Shown here piece by piece: positions 12,001 to 25,413 of a stretch of 64,000 bases of DNA. The stretch is from Takakia lepidozioides (taxonomy: Eukaryota; Plantae; Bryophyta), in the NCBI GenBank assembly GCA_030704615.1, contig CM060733.1, positions 58,962,001 to 59,026,000 on the forward strand, written 5' to 3'. The translations under genes were made by a program, and so were the position numbers. How positions within the stretch are numbered: position 1 is the stretch's first letter; every line of letters begins with the position of its first letter. The notes below the pieces were generated by a model that searched no databases, had not been told where the DNA came from, and worked only from the letters and a program-made list of their open reading frames with translations.

Positions 12001-15000
12001 TCTCAGGTGGGGTTCAAACAGTCATGATCACTTTTGCTCTTGTAACTTCTGATAATCTTTTTTCATTGCAAATTATATGACAAGAATTGGGCCACGTGGC
12101 CTGCTGGAATGGCCTCCTTCACGACTTCTTCAAAAGTTAGAATAGAAAGGTGAATTGCTACTTACAACTAGCATGTCCTAGTGGTAATATGGCTGGTAGG
12201 GATGCTAATATGGTGGATATCCATTTCCCAGCTGGATATACATGAGGTGCATTGTTGGACTAGAGAAACAAGAGCTCGAAACTCACAAAGTTATGAAACC
12301 CCCAGAGACAAACCAGTGTAAATAGACCCACCAGCACGTTTCACTCCAAAGTCAATGTGGCTGCTGATTTGGACACCATGCTTATCTTGTACTAATTGCT
12401 CAGGTCCAGCTTCAATTGCAGCCTTTAATGTTGCTTGGTGCTCGGGGCTACCTTGAAACTCCCTCATCCATCCACACAATGTGTAGTGGAAGCCTTGCGT
12501 AGGTGAGCTAACCAGTTTTAAGTCAACTGGTGGCTTATCTTGATCACCTTAAACATATGGAAAATGAACTTGCAAAATTTAGAATCTTTCTCATGAAAAT
12601 TACATTTAATCGCAGATTACGCAAAATGGTTTTCTGTTGCACAGGATAATATTCTAAAGAGCAACCCTTACATGTCTGTTCAGAAATTACCATCTCCCTG
12701 TCCTCTAGGAAGCCTATTGACATTGGGTGGACTTGAAACGGGAGTACATTAATGTCTCTGTGACTAAATGCCGGCCTTGTGACCTCGTGTCCTTGTTTGT
12801 TTCGACCTGAAGCGCTTTGCTTCAGTAAGGTAGTGCATTGGATTTAGTTGGAAAGCTTGGGGCCTTTCCCTCTTTAGAATATGCCTACACGGGCCATTCC
12901 CTGCAACTCCCTGGAGTGTGATCTCTGAATGGTAACAAGCGGACTCCTACCGCTTGGGGGCAGCCCCTCCGCCCAAATTGGGCAGTCGTATGCTCTGTCT
13001 AGCATACTCGGCACTTGGGCTCGGGTTGGTTCCTGTGCTTAAACTTATGGCCTGCGAAAACAATCAAAAATTTAGCTCCTATCAACATCAACACTCCTCA
13101 GGGTGATCCCTGGGAATTGGTTACTTATGCCAAATCTAGGGCTTCATGTGTAGTTTTTGGGGTGAATCCCAGGATGGACGATGTGTCCTTTAAAACTACA
13201 TGCTCTAGCTTAGGCTTGGATTTCATGGCTAATGGTACCATCTCGAGACTTGATAACAGGGGTACGTTGAAGGTTGCAATGACCAAAAGTGCTTCTAATA
13301 GAGTCCCGCATCAATTCAATCTCAAAGACGTTCGTCCCTTGACTGGCTGGAGAGCGGTCTTAGACCTTGGTGATTCAATGGGGTGCTCTAGGAAAACAAT
13401 ACACGGGGTAATTGTCCCCAAGCCGTCAGATGGACAATCTGTCCCTAAGTGTGCAGAGCCTGAACGTCGTGTAACTGAAGGATTTGGTACTCTAAATGGT
13501 TTACCAATCCTCAAAGTCTACACAAGACGAGCAAAATCTATACACGGGGTAATTGTCCCCAAGCAGTCTGACGGACAATCTGCCCCTATGTGTGCGGAGC
13601 CTGTGCGTCGTGTAACTGAAAGATTTGGTACCCTGAATGGTTTACCAATTCTCAAAGTTTACACAAGACGAGCAAAATCTACACATGGGGTGACTGTCCC
13701 CCCTTTGCAGAACGGTTGGCCGTCCAGGAGCAATCACAAGCTACCTAGACGACAAACAATTCACACGCAAAGGGCTGGCTTGCGGCTGGCCACTTTCAAC
13801 TTCTCAGGGTTGACCAACCAAAGGAAACAACTTGAAGTGGGATTGCAAGAGGCTCTCCCTCATTTTGTCCAATCGCTCCAAGAACTTCAGTCACGCTCTG
13901 TTAACGCAAGAAATGAAGTCGAAAGAGCAGTGGACTCTTGGGAGAGTTTCGTTTCCTCCGTGGCTGACAAGATCATTGGGAGGAAACTAATTGTCTGCGG
14001 TAGAGCAGTTAATTGGTGGACTAATGAGATTAAACTCAAGATAGCTGAGAGACGAGCCCTCTATAAAGAGTGCTGCAATTTGGAAACCAACAGAGAATTG
14101 TGGGCGAGGTACTACCAGCTCCGTAAAGATATCAATCAGCTTGTTAGGTCTCAGAAGAAATTATACTGGGACAAGTTATACAGTGAAATAAACTCAAACC
14201 ACCATGGTGGTAATGACAAAAAATTCTGGTTGGCCCTTCAACGTTTGTACAAGCCGAAAAACGGTCAGCAAGTACAAGCGCTGAAGACTACTAAAGGTGC
14301 AGTGGTGACTTCATCAGTTGACATTGTCAAAACCTTTGAAACTCACTACAGTATCCTTGGCAGAACTTCTAGGTCTAACAGTGAGGGGTCTTCTGCTGAA
14401 TGGAGGGACACAGTTGGAAAAACTGTTCCTATGATTCAAAACAGCCCTGATGAACTGGAGTCTATTTCAATGGCTTATAATGCTCCCATTAGTTCTTCTG
14501 AGATTGTGGAAGCAATTGAACATTTAAATGGATATAAAGCTGGTGGACCTGATGGTATTGTCAACGAGCTTATCAAGCACGGTGGCGATCCCATGATAGA
14601 GGCCTTAGTTCTCCTCTTTTACCTTATCTGGAAGACTGAAATGATCCCCTTTCGCTGGCGACAGGGGGTCATTGTCAATCTATACAAGAAGGGTGACAGA
14701 GAAGAACCAGGGAACTACCGCAGCATCACGCTCCTCAATGCTGTTGGCAAGACATTCTGCAGAGTTATAAGTACTCGTCTCGAGGTTGATCTGCAGTCTA
14801 GAGGTTGTTTCCACGAAGGCCCAGCTGGCTTTCGGCGAAACAGGGGCTGTGTGGATCATATCTTCACTCTAAGCCAGATTATCCAGGGAAGGAAAAAAGA
14901 AGGGAAACCCACTTATGTCTTTTTCCTGGATGTCAAAAAGGCTTATGACACAGTGTGGAGAGATGGCCTATGGTTCCGCCTCTGGTCTTGTGGGATCAAG

Positions 15001-17232
15001 GGAAAGATGTGGAGAGTTGTCCACAACTTGTATGCTCACACCAAAAGCTGTGTCACTGTTAACGGACAGAAGTCCAACTTCTTTGACATAGACCAAGGTG
15101 TAGCTCAAGGATGTACTCTCTCCCCTCTGCTCTTCAATGTTTTCATCAATCAACTCCTCGAGGATGTGGAAAGTGAGGGATTTGGGTTAAGGGTGGGTGA
15201 TACCACCATACCAGCCCTTATGTTTGCGGATGACTTCGCAGGCATAGGGAGACTCCAACCAATCTCCAGGAGTTGATTGATTGCGCGAAGAGATACTTTG
15301 ATCTTTGGGGCTAGAGGCTAATGTCAGCAAATGTGCAGTGGTAGCATTCAACGACAGAGGAGAGGGAGGAAGTGATCTTAAGTGGCAGTGGGGTAGCCAA
15401 GAGATCCCGGTCCTCCCTTCCTACACTTACCTGGGCGTTGAGTTCTCCTCCAATTGTAATTGGGATGCACATATCCGGAAAGTTGTTCAAACTGGCAAGG
15501 GCAAAGCTCTGGGGCTCACTAAATTTTTCCACTGCAGAGGGGTCAACTCTGAGGTTAAGAAAACCATGCTTTGTCGCGTTATTAGACCTGCCTTGGAGTA
15601 CGGATCTGCTATATGGTTTGATAACTCCAACCAGGCTAAGTCTCTAGAATCCATTCAAGTGGGGGTGCTTAAGGAGTGTATGTCAGCATGCTCCAAAACA
15701 GCCAATGTGGCTGTTCGGGGTGAGTTTGGCATTCCGTCCTTAAGCTCCCGACGAGATGAATTCAAGGTCAGATGGTGGGGTCAGCTGCAACATATGCCCA
15801 ACACCAGATATCCTAAGTTAATCGACTCTATATCTTGGAAACAGGACCGCCCTGTCAAACAGGCTAAGTCCTGGCAGAAGAGAGTAGAAGAGATCCTCAA
15901 GGACCTGGACCTGGATCCGCAAGTCTTGACCCTGCTGGATAAATCTGACTTAGAGGCTGTAGTGTCCTCAGCCATGTCTGTTGCCATGAGATTGTCTGAT
16001 GAAAATGAAGTTAGGCAGAAAACTTCCCTGAACTTGTTTCCAGTCTGTGACATGGGGGAGGACATCTTGGATGACCTCAAGGGTCTACCCACTCTCGGCA
16101 CTAGACTGAAATTTAAACTCAGGGCAGGAAGCCTACCTTTGAACAGCAAACAGAAGCAGAGAGGAAAGGGAGAGTGCAATTGCCCGTTGTGTGGGCAATC
16201 TGAAGACAGTATTCATTTTCTGATACACTGTCCGGGGTTCTCTCACCAAAGAGACGCTCTCTTCAAATCTATCAAGGGAATTGTGCCTGTACCCCTGTTT
16301 ACCAACTTTGAAAGTCTCGAGGCTGAGCCAAAAGCCCAGGCCCTCCTGAGGCCTAGTTTTTGGGCAAATCACACACAGCAGATTGATGCTTGTGTGAAGG
16401 GATTTCTAGAGGATATCTGGAAAACCCGGATTAATTCTATATGGGGAGGTAAGTCTTACTACCAACGTCAGCCCCTGACAGAGGTAGGTTCTGTCCCTTT
16501 TGTTCCCACTCAAACTGGGCGCGGGGTCAATGGCCACAAGGCTACGGCAAACAACGTCTTATGAGTACAATCTGTTCAGAAATTACCATTTCAGTATTCT
16601 CTACAAACACTTGGCACATGAAACATAGTGGTTCTGTTGGAGCTTAGTTCATTTGCACCTCAAACACTCTATTACAATCAGAAGGTAAATTGTTACAAGG
16701 TTTGATTTTTACAGTTCTTGTGCATAATGCACCATATTTAACTTTGGTATCCCAAGAGAAGAAGCAGACTTACAAAATCGAGATCCGAATCATTTACCTG
16801 GCTTAATATCTAAGGACTAAAGACTTTGGATGAACTAGCTTCAAAGAGCCACGCGTGGTTTAAATCATGACAAAGGGAAAGAACAAGTGTACCTGATGGC
16901 CCAGATTTGTCACCATGAATATCCTTTCTCAATGTCCCACATTCGGACAACCTTCTGCAAATTGCACCACCCAAGTCGAAAGCAACAGCAGCAGAACCCC
17001 AAGTACAACTTTCAGCTTGACCAGAAGAGGCCTCATAAAAGGGAGGCCCTCCTTGAGAAAGTGGGTGTTGGAGTCCTGTTGATTGGTGCCAAAAGTTCTG
17101 AGACAAATCATCGCCAGCAAGGAATGATTTTTGTAATTCTTCAAGACTTCCATTAGAAAATTGGTCCAAAGGGTTGGGCTCAGATTGGATTGAAAGGGGT
17201 CTAACAGTGTGGGTTTGCGAAATGTCTTGCAT
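1..17232 (-). CDS. MOV10/SDE3/Armitage-like SF1 (UPF1-like) RNA helicase, multi-exon, 3' end beyond the window
   Basis: Exons spliced by eye give collinear helicase motifs: PYLIFGPPGTGKT (~6225-6340), FTHILIDEAGQ (~4423-4470), LCGDPRQLGPV (~3890-3935), TKLLRNYR (~3325-3350), ESPSYFNP (~2180), IGVMAPYRRQ (~1240), VGTVDDYQ (~1025), GQEE..KRFNVAITRAK (696-843), LVVVGHP (~310). MOV10-type N-terminal motifs DKHGV (~12380) and VPGLPENRPSVLAGD (~7960-8007). Likely ATG at 17232; the first coding exon (to ~16893) joins in phase to the exon starting ~12548. One -1 frameshift near 205-215. Confidence 0.9.
2657..2689 (+). mobile_element. Extreme 3' tail remnant of LINE family B with (CATTT)n tail
   Basis: ggacgttataaagtaccatttcatttcatttcat matches the reverse complement of the terminus at ~17311-17347. 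Confidence 0.6.
2714..3240 (+). mobile_element. 5'-truncated copy of LINE family A, intronic
   Basis: C-terminal KGLPTLGTRLKFKLRAG..CPLCGQPED..C..GVNGHKATANIVL homologous to 15305-16564. (CT)n on the 5' side; ends gtacattctctctc. Confidence 0.9.
9284..10900 (-). mobile_element. Head-to-tail chain of four 5'-truncated LINE family A pieces
   Basis: Pieces at ~10323-10868, ~10178-10298, a mini-piece at ~10148-10168 and ~9284-10135. Each carries the family 3' end GTACA(A/T)TC. A (TC)n tract at ~10873-10899 flanks the 5' side. Confidence 0.88.
12694..16570 (+). mobile_element. Long copy of LINE family A (RTE/RTEX-like non-LTR retrotransposon) with 19-bp TSD
   Basis: TSD tctgttcagaaattaccat at 12675-12693 and 16571-16589. 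RT motifs KAGGPDG, NYRSITLL, FLDVKKAYD, GVAQGCTLSPLLF, FADD, YTYLG. C-terminal CPLC..HFLIHC knuckle. ORF split near 15250-15310. The clade call is by motif pattern only. Confidence 0.93.
13399..13702 (+). repeat. 141-bp (47-aa) tandem repeat inside the LINE ORF, about 2.2 copies
   Basis: IHGVIVPK..LKVYTRRAKS units start at 13399, 13540 and 13681. Confidence 0.9.
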
Positions 17233-17310: not shown

Positions 17311-17800
17311 GAAATGAAATGAAATGAAATGGTGCTTTATAACGTCCACGGAAAGCTCGTAGAGCTTATGGGACAAAATGGAAGAAAACATGAGAGAGGA
17401 ACAAATCCAGAAACCACAATTAATGTTCTAGCGATTGTCTAAGGGTGAAGGCCTCGTGTAGGTAGGCTGCCAAGCATTTTTTATCCTCATAGTGAAAGAC
17501 ATCAGTGAGAGTTTGGGTTCCACTGAATAAACAGTGGAATCTCCCACGGATCTCGTAGTATAGAGGGCAGTAGAAGAAGAAGTGTTCTTCAGTTTCAATT
17601 TCCTTGCTGCGCCCTATGCAAGCTGGACATAGGCGGTCCTCCCGTTGCAGGTTTTCCCATCTGCCAGTCTCTATCCGTAGGTTGTGGGAACCCACCCTGA
17701 ACCGCCCCAATGCCCTCAAGAGGGAAGGAGATAAGGGTGCTGAAAGGTAATTTGGTCTCAAGAGAAACGAACAGGTAAGAACAGGTGTCGATATTGTCTT
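17311..17800 (-). mobile_element. 5'-truncated RTEX-like LINE (family B) with (CATTT)n tail
   Basis: RFRVGSHNLRIETGRW..RLCPAC..ETEEHFFFYCPLY C-terminus; (gaaat)4 on + at 17311-17330. The 5' boundary is approximate. Confidence 0.8.
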
Positions 17801-18470
17801 AGCTGGAGGATTGGGACTCAATGCTGTTCCAGCTATAGATGAAGACGGAGATTCATCATCTAGAAAGTTTAAAAAGTAGATTGAAGTAGATTCACTGAGT
17901 AGAGTGCAATTCGCACACAAACTGTTACGAGCTTTCACCGAGCTAAAGCTTCCTGCGTCTGAGACATGAGAAATAGAAGAGTCTCTTGGTATATAAGGGA
18001 AGTAGAGATTCGAATGCGGAAGGGCACTGAACTGTTGTTTAACTAAAACCATCAACCTAACCAACAAATTGCACTCAACCTAGAACTCGTCATCAAATAC
18101 TTTCTCGAGGGGCTGACCCAAGATCGCCCCCACTTGTGTCCATTCCCCCGTGGCGCTCTGCTATATTCCCCTGGTGTGGAGTGCACTTTGATCAGACATG
18201 ATATCAGGAGACAGCGTTCCAGGCACGAAAATGCGTCTGTCCCCACCATTGCCATCCAGCCACTGAACAAGAATAACTCTTCTCAACCAAATTTGACCGC
18301 CAATTGAGAAGGCTCGTCTGCAATCCCCTACAACACGAACGCCTTCACAGAACTAAACAGGGTAACTGAAGAACTACATACTCTTCTCTGTGTCTCCTCC
18401 TTCCTCAAATCATGTCTTGTTCAAATGCAATCACCACGAGTTTGAAATAGGTACAACTGAACTTGGAACG

Positions 18471-18487: not shown

Positions 18488-18690
18488 TTCACAAGCCTTG
18501 CAGGCATGATGCCAAGAGATTCTTTCTTTCTTTCTTTTTGGTAGAAGGGGGATGGAAGCCCCTGAACTTTACATCATAGGGACAAAAAACCCGGGGGTAT
18601 GACAGGATTTGGCATGATTCGGTATTCTTCCTGGTGTTTACAAGGTGCTTGGGAGGGTCAGCTTCGTCTTACCACGCCGTGTGTAAATCT

Positions 18691-21600
18691 ATGGCTGCTC
18701 AGCTGCACCATGGTGGTTCTCAAAGACCAATCCGAGATCACCCGACCACAGACAAGAGCAGCACACGCAAGAGATTCTTTTGGGTTGATAGTTGGTTGAA
18801 TACTCCATGGGTGAAAGAAAAGGTAGCTGCTTTTATGACACAAGGTCAAGGACAATGTGGTGAGCCACCTTCTTCTTCAACACATTTTGGCCTGTTTTGC
18901 CCTCTTATCAGAATCGTCCCTAATTTTTCTTGTTGAATTCTGCAAGTTAGCTCGTTGGGTGGATCTTTGGTTGTTTGGAGTGATTTTGGCATGTTACTGC
19001 CAATGTGTGGCAACAGGAAATTATCCAAAAACAGAAAACAGAGACGAGGAGAAGCTTTGGAAGGAATATTTGCCAGACCCCAGTCAATGGTGGGACAATC
19101 GAGGCAAAAAGGTGAATGCCTGTAGCATTACAGAGAGAAGCTGACAACAAGATGCTTGGCAAAGCTTTCTTGGAAATCGTCATCCTCTCTCTCCCCAGCA
19201 TATTTTTAAGTCTTGGTAGCAATTCAGCATAGGAACTAGTGTGGGATAAGTAGGGTTGGGGTATTTGCTAGAACAAGTTTAGGCTGTCATTGTCAGCTGC
19301 TTGGGATGGAGTGTGGGTCCAGATTCAGTCCAGAGGGCCGGAATTCAAGCACAAGATTACCTATGATTCCCTGTGGATTGATAGCTACAAGAAACCTGCA
19401 TGGGTAGATGGTCAACTGGAATCAGCAGCAGTACAATTGATAAAATCAGGCACCTCCACCATGACCACAGCTTTCGACAGAGGACCAAGAGAGGCAATGC
19501 CTCTTCTGGCACTTCTGGGCATGCGAGGACGCCATGTGAGGCTGGGCAACTGAAAGAGGCTCTACAGACTTTAAACCAAGGAGGCTTTTCAGCAGATTCA
19601 GATACTTATGTCTGTCTCTTGCATAAATCCATCAAGATGAATGCCCTGGAAGCCGGAAAGCAGGTGCATGCTCACATCATCCTAAGTGGATTCAAGCCAA
19701 ACGTTTTTCTACACAACATGCTTGTCAACATGTATGTTAAGTGTGGGAGCATTGTGAATGCTCACCAAGTATTCAACAGAATGCCTGAACGATCTTTGAT
19801 CACGTGGAATATAATGATGGCAGGATTTACCAAGCATGGGTATGGTAGTAATACTTTGGAGGCCTACGAGCAAATGATGCGGGAAGGGATGAAACCCAAC
19901 CGGGTCACCTTCATTTGCGTTTGCAATGCGTGTGCGAGCCTGGCAGCCCTGGAAATGGGCAAAGAGGTCCAGGGTGACATCATCAAAGCTGGGATTGTAC
20001 CAGATGTCATTCTGAGCACTGCCCTGATAAACATGTATGCCAAATGTGGGAGCATGGAGGATGCAAAGGGAGTATTCGACAATATGGCTGAACAAAATGT
20101 GGTGTCCTGGAGTGCTATGATTGCAGGATACGCACAGCAAGGGTGTGGGATGGAGGCTTTGGAGACCTATGAGCAAATGATGCAGGAAGGGGTGAAGCCC
20201 AACCGGGTCACATTCATTTCTGTTTGTAATGCGTGTGCCAGCTTGGCAGCCCTGGAAAAGGGCAAAGAGGTCCATGGTGATGTCATCAAAGCCGGAATTG
20301 TACCAGATGTGGTTCTGAGCAATACGCTGGTGGACATGTATGCCAAATGTGGCAGCATCAAGGATGCAATGGGAGTGTTCAACAATATGGTCGAACGAGA
20401 TGTGGTGTCATGGAACACGATGATCGCAGGATATGGTCAGCAGGGGTGCAGGATGAAGGCTTTGGAGACCTATGAGCAAATGATGCAGGAAGGGGTGAAG
20501 CCCAACCGGGTCACGTTTGTTTGCGTTTGCAATGTGTGTGCAAGCCTGGCAGCCCTGGAAAAGGGCAAAGAGGTCCATGGTGACATCATCAAAGCTGAAA
20601 TTGTACCAGATGTCATTCTGAGCAATACCCTAGTGGACATGTATGCCAAATGTGGCAGCATTGAGGATGCAAAGGGAGTATTCGACAATATGACCAAACA
20701 GGATGTGGTGTCGTGGAATGCAATGATCGCAGGATATGCTCAGCAGGGGTGTGGGATGGAGGCTTTGGAGATCTATGAGCAAATGATGCAGGAAGGGGTG
20801 AAGCCCAACCGGGTCACGTTTGTTTGCGTTTGCAATGCGTGTGCGAGCCTGGCAGCCCTGGAGAGGGCCAAAGAGTTCCACGGTGATATTATGAAAGCTG
20901 GAATTGTACCAGATGTCATTCTGAAGAATGCCCTCATGGACATGTATGCCAAATGCGGGAGCATCGAAGATGCAAAGGGAGTATTTGACAATATGGCTCA
21001 ACGAGATGTGGTGTCATGGAACGCGATGATCTCAGGATATGCGCAGCATGGGTGCGGGATGGAGGCTTTGGAGACCTATGAGCAAATGACAAAGGAAGGG
21101 GTGAAGCCCAACCACATTACGATGGTTTGTGTATGCAATGCATGTGCGAGCCTCGCAAACCTCGAAAAGGGCAAAGAGGTTCATGCTGACATCATCAAAG
21201 CCGGATTTGTACGGGATGTCATTCTGAGCAATACCCTGGTGGACATGTATGCAAAATGTGGCAGCATCGAGGATGCAAAGGGAGTGTTCAATGATATAGT
21301 GGAACGAGATGTGGTGTCATGGAATGCGATGATCACAGGATATTTGCGGCAGGGATGCGGGATGGAGGCTTTGGAGACCTATGAGCAAATGAGGCAGGAA
21401 CGGATGAAGCCAGACCGGGTCACATTTGTTTGTATTTGCAATGCATGTGCGAGCCTGGCAGCCCTGGAAAAGGGTAGAGAGGTCCACGGTGACATCATCC
21501 AAGCTGGAGTTGTACCAGATATCATTCTGAACACTACTCTGGTGGACATGTATGCCAAATGCGGCAGCATCGAAGATGCAGAGGGAGTGTTTGACAATAT

Positions 21601-22045
21601 GGCTGAACGAAATGTGGCGTCATGGAACGCAATGATCGCAGGATATGCCCAGCATGGTTATGATATGGAGGCCCTGCAACTATTGGAAGAAATGCAGGTG
21701 GAAGGCTTGAAGCTGGACAGTATCACGTTACTATGTGTTCTCTCTGCATGCGGCCATGCAGGCCTAGTGGATGAAGGAAAATACTTCTTTGACTCCCTGA
21801 GTCAAGATCATGGCATCACTCCGGCAGTGGAGCACTTTAGCGCCATGGTGGATCTTCTGGGCCGTGCTGGGCGATTGGATGAGGCAGAGGACTTCATTAA
21901 CAAAATGCCAATGAAACCAAATAATGCGGTGTGGAGGGCCTTGCTTGGTGCCTGTAGAATCCACGGCAATGTGGAGATGGCTGAACGTGCAGCAACATCT
22001 ATTATCAAGCAGGATGAACAGGACTCTGCGACTTGCCGCAGCTGA
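18691..22045 (+). CDS. PLS-E class PPR protein with N-terminal OSB-type PDF motif; one frameshift and a damaged E2 end
   Basis: Exons ~18691-18859, 19017-19111 and 19323 onward join in phase with GT-AG introns: LWKEYLPDPSQWWDNRGKK|IQSRGPEFKHKITYDSLWIDSYKKPAWV. ORF 19400-22045 has about 7 L-S-P triplets (MYAKCGS, VVSWNAMI, VTF..NACASL), then P2-L2-S2 and E1 (VWRALLGACRIHGN). No DYW domain. The start codon is uncertain. Confidence 0.85.
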
Positions 22046-22056
22046 CAAGTAAATAC

Positions 22057-22255
22057 CAGTGTTGTGCGGGTATATTGATTTCAATATACCCTTAGGGTAT
22101 AAGTAAATTATTTTTGTCCCTCCGGGTATGGATAAATTGAAATCTCAAAAAATTATTTACCCTCCGGGTATGGGTAAATTAACTTTTCAGATTTCTACAT
22201 AACCCCCGGTTATGGATATATATGCCCCGGGGTATGGATAGTTATTTCCATTAAT
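22057..22255. mobile_element. Probable DNA-transposon (hAT-like) end with subterminal ccgggtat repeats
   Basis: Begins cagtgttg and has about 5 spaced cc(c/t)ccgggtatgg-like motifs. No partner end was found. Confidence 0.4.
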
Positions 22256-22468: not shown

Positions 22469-25413
22469 ATGCAAGATGGAGGAGGTTTGAGATTAAAACC
22501 GATGTTGCCAAAGATCATTAAGAAAGAGCAGACGGGTTTCCTAAAGGACCGAATGATCCTTGACAACATCCTTCTGGCCCATGAAGCCCTTCACAGAGCT
22601 GAACTCAACAATCAACCGCTTGCATTTTTAATGCTCGACTTTGAGAAGGCGTTTGATTCCATTGACTGGAGTTTTCTGTTGGGGGCTCTTCAAAGAACTG
22701 GGCTGGTGGGGCCTTTCTAGGTTCACATTCTACTACACTCAGCGTCAAGCAAGGTTATGGTGAATGGGATGGTTTCCAAGGCTTTCCCAATATCCAAATC
22801 TGTGAGGCAGGGTTGCCCCCTGGCCCCGTTCCTCTTTCTCATCGCTGCGGATTCGCTTGGCCATTTGCTGGAATCAAGACATGATATTGTCGGTCTTCAA
22901 CTACCCACCCTGCATACTGAAATGCTCAAGCTGTCCATGTACGCAGATGACACTTGCCTTCTCCTTGATAACTCCACACGCAGCAACGTTGACAAAGCGC
23001 TTCAGGCCCTTCACACTTTTTGCCTAGGTTCAGGGCTTAAGGTCAACTGGAGGAAATCTATGGGAATTCTGTCTCTACTACATTGTGGAGCAGGCACTGC
23101 TCACTGTCAAGCCTGGGGAGCTGATCTGGGCTTAAACTGGCTACAGGAAGGACAGACTCATACTCTGCTGGGTCACCAGATATGCCTAAACATGTTGCAG
23201 CAAACCACATGGAAAGCAGTGATCACAAGATTCAAAAGAAATCTCGCTTTCTGGTCTGCAGCCATGCTATCAATTGTGGGAAGGGCACTAGTGGCAAACC
23301 AGGTGCTTTCCAACTCTATCTGGTACTTCGCGGCGGTGTGGAATCCAGACAAGTCCATGGTCAAAGAAATTAAGGCCCTCTTACGTAACTTCATATGGGG
23401 TGCCATTGCGGCGGCACCTGTGAGAAGAGCGTTGCTCTCCTGGGAGTAGTTGTGTCAGAAGAAAATACAAGGTGGGCTAGGCATTATTGACCCAGCTGCT
23501 CAGATCAAGGCCCTGCTAGCAAAATGGATTCCAAGGGCAATAACACACAGGGATGCACCATGGAGCAAGCTCATTCAACCTTACTTGATGGGGTCCCTAC
23601 CCACAACCTCTCATCTCTAGGCTCAATCACTAAGATGGATTGTTCAAGGCAGAAACGCCGCAGTCTCATTGGGCTCTAGACCCTGGCAGTCCATCTGGAA
23701 GCATGGCATTGCATGAGAGGCAATCTCACACAAAGAATGCCAGCAAACAAGCAAGAATGCTTGCGGCAACCTTTGTTTGCCAACTACAACATGGACTCTG
23801 GAATTCTACTCACCCAAAGCCCGAGATGGGCTTCATGGGAAGACAGGGTTTCACTCACATTGCCAATATGCAGTTGGATGGTCAGTTCATGAGTGAGGCA
23901 ATGGTGGCTGAAATGATGGGTCGGAGGAGAGCCAGGGCCTAGTACATCATACTTGCCAATGTGCCGCAATATATGAGCCCCTTGCTTGATGAAGATGACC
24001 ACACATCCAAAACCCTTGCTTGGATGGCATCTTCACAAGGGAATCACATTCCGATCATGCTTGTTATGTCATCTACAGAACTGGTGGTGTCTGGTCTAGG
24101 TTTCTTGGCCGACCAGGAAGGGCATCTCACATATTCAGAAAGAGTAGAGATGAATCGGTCTTTGCTGTTCCACATCAGGGTGCTGGACAGCCTCGGAAAT
24201 CCCAACCCCATGCCTCCTCTGGGTTTGGAAGCTCAATGGGCTCGACAAGAAACTCTAACCTGGTTTCTCAAATGCCCCTTGACTGATCTGCAATTTGACC
24301 CGGCGGAGTGGAGGTGGATGGATAAGAAAAAAACACCATTTTTTTCCTACTCTGTCAAGAAAGGTTATACTCTCATCAACCCCCCGCGCTCATTAAAAAA
24401 CAGGTGGTCCAGCAAATGGGGCAGCCTGCAACTTGGCCGGAACACATGGAACAACATCTGGAAAGACGTATGGAGGAAGTACAGACCATCCAAGCTATCG
24501 GGTTTCCTTTGGAAGCTCGCACATAGGATCCTCCCTGTCAGACAGAAGACACATGAGGATGATCGAACTTGCACTCTTTGTCATGCAAACCCAGAATCTA
24601 TTGAATACTGCTTACTGCTCTGCAATATATCAAACAGAATCTGGAGTTTGGTCATCAGTTTCTACTCTCACTATGACATCTTTCCAAACCCTCCTCCCCA
24701 ATCTCTACTTCTGCTCAATTTTCTACCTGCTCTTAGAGCTCTTACATTATGGAATTTGTGGAAAAGCAGATGTGCTTGGGTTTTTGAGAAAAAACCCCCC
24801 AGAGGCAGATCAATATTATTTCATACTTACCATGACCTGCTTACAGGGGAGAAAAGCATGGTTTACTGTCTGTGCAGCTCTTCCCAGAACTTCGGAGCAA
24901 CGGGGGCGGAAGCTGCTTCAAGACTTCTATGATCCTTGGGGAAAAAGCAAGGATCATCTACGGCTCTGCTACGAGGCCTCACCTCCCTCAACTCCTTCAC
25001 AGCTTCGATTCTCCACGATTTACGCTTTAGAATGCTGCTTCAGTGTGCACCTTCCTAAACCTTGCGTAAAGGGCCCCTCCCTCCTTGCTTAGTTCCAGAT
25101 TGTTTTTGGACTGCTTGGACTTTCATCTTACTGTTCTTTTTCTGCACCTCTCCCTCTCTCCCCTTCTGCTTAGCAGATTCGCTAGGGTAACGGGGAAGTT
25201 CCCCCTCTGTTAGCCTCCACGGCCTTCCTAGGTGGTTATTTTTTCCACCTTTTCAACCTTTGTTTAATTTAATTTGATTAAAAGGGCCTCTGTCCCTTTC
25301 ATTCTTAATTTTTTTTTAAATAAAAAATAAAAAAAATAAAAAAAATTTAATTATATTATTTATTTAATTATAATAATTTAAATTTAAATTTAATAAATAA
25401 TAATTAAAAATAT

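Follow-up and report, generated by a model that had tools for sequence, protein, structure and literature searches.

A probable decayed copy of a seedless-plant gene family that joins OSB-type PDF motifs to PLS-class PPR arrays

We analysed a stretch of 64 kb of DNA (the window) and found that the locus at about 18664-22047 on its plus strand is probably, at roughly 0.7, a decayed copy, that is, a pseudogene or gene fragment, of a large family of PLS-class PDF-PPR genes of seedless plants. Judged by the protein and contig sequences compared here, the fusion of PDF and PPR parts is real at the level of the family. The products of this family are predicted to have, between a presequence and the PPR array, at least one PDF motif of the OSB type. 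The copy in the window appears to retain the exon structure and the PDF motif and to have suffered three defects, namely a frame break in the linker, the loss of everything after E1 and an exchange of Asp for Glu. The frame break would uncouple the PDF head from the PPR array. Because head and array lie in different frames and the array ends before E2 and DYW, no PDF-PPR editing factor can be made from the locus in its present state.

The PDF head and its exons

The head of the locus was read as three exons, laid out as follows (all on the plus strand).

18691-18859, plus strand: exon 1, with ATG, a short presequence and half a PDF motif (second half only); 169 nt, ending in phase 1
18860-19016, plus strand: intron 1, 157 nt, GTGAGC..CAACAG
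19017-19111, plus strand: exon 2, first half of the PDF motif (LW...DPSQWWDNR..KK); 95 nt, profile E 2.7e-8
19112-19322, plus strand: intron 2, 211 nt, GTGAAT..GTCCAG, inside the PDF motif
19323-19463, plus strand: conserved part of exon 3, with the second PDF half (PEFKHK...LW...P.WV) and the start of the linker
19551-19553, plus strand: stop codon of the exon 3 (PDF) frame

A previous sequence-only reading of this DNA had proposed three GT-AG exons joining in phase, and this structure was confirmed, with fitting phases and with the peptides of exons 2 and 3 as quoted there. The two leading bases of exon 2 finish a Gly codon and are followed by 31 codons, whose translation ends in ...DPSQWWDNRGKK; exon 3 opens at 19323 in phase 0 and its translation begins with IQSRGPEFKHK...LWIDSYKKPAWV. 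Two public runs in the form of contigs, X1 and X2, which may be RNA, were compared with the window. The joint 18859|19017 (GT..AG), which corresponds to intron 1, occurs in four contigs of X1. Be these contigs spliced RNA or processed copies, this shows that the sites of intron 1 are used. The joint of intron 2 was not among the 15 joints listed (190 further joints).

A PDF profile was made from 75 motif copies drawn from OSB-like proteins and PPR proteins, and each of the 2681 stop-to-stop pieces that the six frames of the whole window yield was compared with it; the exons were searched singly. The exon 2 piece matched profile positions 2-25 (E 2.7e-8) and the exon 3 piece positions 24-60 (E 1e-10), and these ranges abut as the two halves of one motif. 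In the rest of the window no PDF match was better than E 0.07, and the next-best pieces (E 0.07 and 0.085) both lay within exon 1. A profile of the N-termini of the family matched exon 1 with its positions 29-68 (E 4.6e-6), which upholds the previous proposal of a second half motif upstream; in tblastn, exon 1 and N-termini of Diphasiastrum complanatum proteins were 55-62% identical over 29 aa.

The individual signatures agree with this assignment. The W-x-D-x-R block, in which W, D and R are invariant among the 75 motif copies, is present in exon 2 as WWDNR, and the second half LW...P-x-W-V is present in exon 3. With the exons read in phase, eight residues separate WWDNR from P-E-F, the same number as in the D. 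complanatum proteins. The profile matches and this family spacing thus bear out the OSB-type PDF motif that had been rebuilt from exons 2 and 3. The Pro-Asp-Phe signature itself lacks its Asp, a residue invariant in the 75 motif copies, as the window codes for Pro-Glu-Phe. At position 19343 the window has A, giving a Glu codon, and nearly all similar contigs have T, giving an Asp codon (19341-43). Pfam, which has no PDF model, gave no match to the exon pieces, an OB fold included, and tblastn with the OB regions of five OSB-like proteins gave no match near the locus.

OSB proteins are the known carriers of the ~50-residue PDF motif with its W-x-D-x-R, P-D-F, LW and P-x-W-V blocks. They lack PPRs and have an OB-fold or SSB-like domain, with PDF motifs behind it at the C-terminus (PMC6963530, PMC13393729), whereas the PDF motif of the window lies N-terminal to a PPR array, has no OB fold with it in the window and carries Glu for Asp. 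According to the passages on OSB proteins in two papers that both cite Zaegel et al. 2006, these proteins favour ssDNA over dsDNA or RNA, and ssDNA binding of PDF-motif proteins is known for AtOSB1/2 only (PMC4166229, PMC6963530).

The PDF-PPR family in other plants

A search with the exon 3 query among 1.84 billion representatives returned 51 matches, all to query residues about 3-48. Most of these were OSB-like multi-PDF proteins, among them one (P0003) with a Pfam SSB domain. The best match (P0001) is a transcript-derived protein of 1371 aa, encoded on a 4755-nt contig from a public run, in which a long PPR array comes after three PDF motifs. When the PPR ORF was the query, its nearest relatives were PPR proteins of D. 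complanatum, at 52-57% identity, and N-terminal PDF motifs were found in about 25 of the 120 best matches, nearly all of them from D. complanatum and four being metagenome ORFs. The PDF head of one such protein (P0098), used as a query in turn, matched 62 D. complanatum clusters, every one with PPR Pfam domains and many with DYW (PF14432). D. complanatum is the only taxon named with certainty in these searches.

The usual order of parts in these relatives is a presequence, half a PDF motif, a full PDF motif, a linker of ~20-35 residues, the PLS array, E1, E2 and, in many, DYW. The window copy shares with them this order and the intron inside the PDF motif. In two plant contigs from metagenomes (L002 and L003), the upstream exon ends in ...WWDHR.EK|GT and the PPR ORF begins just before PDFK, so that their intron and intron 2 of the window interrupt the motif at one and the same point. 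The order is also that of the D. complanatum proteins O6H91_15G000200 (P0098) and O6H91_10G005500 (P0137). Identity of the window copy to such O6H91_* proteins is 52-57% over the PPR part and 60-67% over the first PDF half. The D. complanatum models are uninterrupted ORFs, and many of them include DYW; the window copy, in contrast, is broken in frame, shortened at its C-terminus and from another organism. In-frame homologues are thus numerous, and the fusions among non-seed plants to which the sequence-only reading had pointed do exist.

We then looked at the predicted structure of the head, using AlphaFold2 on residues 1-230 of P0098 with 43 homologues. In the model, a small, confidently predicted PDF domain of alpha/beta type (pLDDT 85-94) is followed by a linker that is disordered at residues 60-77 (pLDDT <50) and then by the PPR helices; the PDF domain modelled alone reached pLDDT 90. 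No relative of the PDF domain with a solved structure was found by sequence. By structure, the best Foldseek hits were WW domains at a non-significant E of 5.8, and the best VIA-align Z was 2.5, again with no solved relative.

In public databases the D. complanatum PDF-PPR proteins are labelled 'hypothetical protein' (O6H91_*). Among the papers searched, we found none that combines PDF or OSB with PPR, no experiment on a PDF-PPR protein and no report of a PDF head on the described PPR-E or PPR-DYW editing factors. Papers on OSB evolution (PMC13393729), plant editing factors (PMC13386178) and PPR56 (PMC10482289) do not mention PDF together with PPR.

Frame break, shortened array and copies of the unit

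The remainder of the locus consists of the linker and the PPR array, which overlap with the end of the exon 3 frame listed above.

19464-19498, plus strand: interval in the linker that holds the break between PDF frame and PPR frame
19499-22042, plus strand: PLS-class PPR array in the other frame, which is open from the ATG at 19400; PPR Pfam families, 303-nt period
22043-22045, plus strand: stop codon of the PPR frame, three codons past the point where homologues go on with YVLLSNIYA (E2)

Exon 3 had been described as overlapping the PPR ORF with an offset of one base, and this is what we find (PPR ORF 19400-22045, 881 aa). Along the family profile, positions 12-71 matched in the exon 3 frame (to ~19463) and positions 76-230 in the PPR frame (from ~19499), and tblastn with Diphasiastrum N-termini followed the exon 3 frame until 19451 and the PPR frame from 19493. 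The frame switch in both comparisons places the break within 19464-19498. No match was obtained with residues 1-90 of the PPR frame, a stretch that is mostly non-coding in this frame. The exon 3 frame runs into a stop codon at 19551-53, and there is no credible intron that would link it to the array; the proposal that the locus encodes one protein was therefore not sustained. The broader claim, that a PDF module heads PLS PPR proteins, holds for the family, with its in-frame relatives, and fails for this copy, with its different frames and no E2 or DYW.

An error of assembly at the break was ruled out by an independent X1 contig (record 4), which is identical to the window over 19446-19564. 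We also considered introns that would restore the frame. Of 84 GT/GC..AG intervals that fit arithmetically, none had a plausible donor, acceptor or length while sparing the conserved residues. It is thus very improbable that the locus is an intact fusion gene in which an unusual short intron in the linker mends the frame. Taking out 3n+2 nt there would do so, and in this part the window is collinear with one or more paralogous contigs; if many copies had this arrangement, it might be no defect. But only one interval near the break fits arithmetically, a 44-nt one with GC-AG ends (19450-19493). Its length, its GC donor and its lack of a pyrimidine tract set it far apart from the introns of land plants, and its joint was not among the joints listed. 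Moreover, in L002 and L003 the ORF continues from the PDF half straight into the PPRs, its coding sequence crossing the linker without an intron, and the spliced protein would still be without E2 and DYW.

The array itself comprises seven units of 303 nt (about 19601-21721), each a tandem P-L-S triplet (35+35+31 residues), followed by P2-L2-S2 and E1. Over its 881 codons the PPR frame has 15 Pfam PPR stretches, PPR_2 scoring E 1.9e-123. Triplets 2-7 are 76-90% identical to one another in DNA, and the specificity positions are nearly uniform, with Asn/Asn or Asn/Asp in the P motifs and Asn/Asp in the S motifs. Under the published PPR code, an array of Asn/Asn and Asn/Asp would presumably have a monotonous, pyrimidine-rich target. 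Given the identity among triplets and the near-uniform specificity positions, the array looks like a recent internal duplication and not like a tuned reader.

At the C-terminus, 15 of 16 aligned homologues extend past the end of the ORF with YVLLSNIYA (E2), many then continuing into DYW. E2 and the DYW deaminase (HxE, CxDCH) are absent from every frame of the 64 kb, and Pfam E_motif had no match among the families listed. A displacement of E2 and DYW by an insertion was rejected, as neither is present anywhere in the 64-kb window. The array had been called PLS-E: the PLS array and E1 were recovered, and the full E part was not, with E2 and DYW missing. The window copy accordingly shares P-L-S triplets, P2-L2-S2 and E1 with the PLS editing factors (PPR-E and PPR-DYW, such as Physcomitrium PPR56/PPR65), but unlike them has no E2 or DYW and has a head that is out of frame.

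As the PPR frame is open for 881 codons, the decay is recent or the array may still be in use. The latter would mean that the copy serves as a PPR-only gene, translated from the ATG at 19400 into an 881-aa PLS protein that ends after E1. Its first 45 residues, rich in Ser, Thr, Arg and His, would be the presequence, and the PDF exons would form either a leader or a short ORF of their own, with ~163 codons. That an ATG opens the PPR frame at 19400, and that the frame stays open through its 15 Pfam PPR stretches, speaks for this, and we consider it unlikely all the same. In a transcript started at exon 1 the ATG at 19400 sits within the PDF frame and after several other ATGs, and there is no sign of a transcript start inside intron 2. 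Furthermore, the relatives extend beyond the end of the ORF, and the similarity of triplets 2-7 together with the near-uniform code residues would direct the array to an unspecific target.

Contigs of at least 90% identity pile up on about 18664-22047, more than 9000 of them in X1 and more than 5000 in X2, with almost none outside. This pile-up indicates that the unit belongs to a very large family in the organism of the runs. Since the introns are covered as deeply as the exons, much of the contig signal is unspliced RNA or DNA. No indels relative to the window were listed in X1 or X2 over 19244-21088 (10% threshold), and over 19381-19494 an X2 contig, 91% similar, aligns collinearly with the window. 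The frame arrangement may thus be shared with other copies, which a private mutation would not explain. An arrangement common to such copies would suggest either a subfamily of pseudogenes or a mobile element that captured the unit.

In the surroundings of the unit, LINE fragments (RVT_1, zf-RVT) lie on both flanks, and a perfect palindrome with an 11-bp stem occupies 22068-22091, just 3' of the unit. The 64-kb window has no second copy of the unit and no repeated flanks. Capture by a mobile element would make the unit (18664-22047) a gene fragment that was multiplied with its defects, which would be common to many copies, and that was never a working gene at this place. The confinement of similar contigs to the unit, introns included, and the palindrome directly behind it would suit such an origin. 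However, no carrier element was found. The flanks are single-copy in the window and lack the X1/X2 pile-up that a carrier would show, and no transposon ends or transposase adjoin the unit. The limits of the pile-up are those of the gene, as expected of any large gene family. We therefore regard capture as quite unlikely and favour a decayed copy of the PDF-PPR family.

Possible role of the intact members

What the PDF domain does within PDF-PPR proteins we can only infer. PPR arrays bind RNA with their N-terminal repeats toward the 5' side, and for this reason a PDF domain on a flexible tether would, in intact members, lie 5' of the recognised sequence. From there it could hold a single strand, whether RNA beside the site or nucleoid ssDNA in the vicinity, and in this way raise affinity or local concentration. 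The sequence-only reading had suggested that a protein of this kind could tether editing to nucleoids or to transcription bubbles or R-loops, or could read ssDNA.

We tentatively propose, as a possibility with less than even odds, that intact PDF-PPR proteins are a working, undescribed class of organellar editing factors in lycophytes and other seedless plants, with the PDF domain as a built-in single-strand clamp. If so, the clamp would grip RNA 5' of the PPR footprint or nucleoid ssDNA, and PDF would do part of the work of the separate helper proteins of seed plants. MORF-type helper proteins are reported to be missing from this lineage. The locus in the window would then be a fossil of the class. 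Should its frame arrangement be common to many copies, the locus could also yield a stand-alone PDF mini-protein.

The window copy itself contributes little, namely the exon structure of the family and an instance of decay among its copies; the better objects of study are intact copies, in Diphasiastrum complanatum and elsewhere in this genome. Of the nucleic-acid-binding modules of plant organelles, the PDF motif is the one least understood, and PPR editing factors are in use for the programmable reading of RNA. A family with both parts in one protein would offer a natural test of what PDF binds and of whether editing gains from it.

Remnant of the PDF motif at exon 1

The window was searched with a profile of the PDF motif, the module of organellar ssDNA-binding OSB proteins. 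This gave a weak remnant of the middle of the motif at 18687-18785 (+) (NPRSPDHRQEQ..., profile positions 21-38, E 0.085), which lies directly 5' of the half motif of exon 1 and does not share the reading frame opened by the ATG at 18691. Because this remnant of the motif's middle adjoins the half motif in another frame, exon 1 may, on sequence grounds, be a decayed full PDF copy.

Among the public proteins matched by the second PDF half in exon 3, P0012 (908 aa) is built from at least 11 PDF repeats. PDF motifs also precede a kinesin motor domain in P0049 (1526 aa) and a long coiled-coil-like tail in P0036 (1063 aa); these latter two may be merged gene models.

Flanking retroelements and 3' sequence

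The locus is flanked by fragments of non-LTR retrotransposons (Pfam RVT_1, zf-RVT), and further repeats lie 3' of the PPR stop codon:

13015-15276 (+), non-LTR retrotransposon fragment
17420-18067 (-), ORF of 215 aa
22068-22091, perfect palindrome (11-bp stems, 2-nt loop), 23 nt 3' of the PPR stop codon
22105-22240, downstream of the palindrome, a unit resembling CCGGGTATGGATA, present in three copies, among them a 42-nt tandem pair
22469-23449 (+), non-LTR retrotransposon fragment
23961-24932 (+), non-LTR retrotransposon fragment

A Pfam search with the minus-strand ORF of 215 aa (17420-18067) returned no match.

Contig depth and the PLS triplets

Summed depth of the public-run contigs showed a peak at 19369-19509, across the linker and the second half of the PDF motif, at ~4-fold that of neighbouring bins, and a further peak was observed over one PLS triplet (20497-20637). 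Within 19601-21721, PLS triplets 2-7 share 76-90% DNA identity, and their code residues are near-uniform. This sequence pattern suggests recent internal duplication or homogenisation of these triplets.
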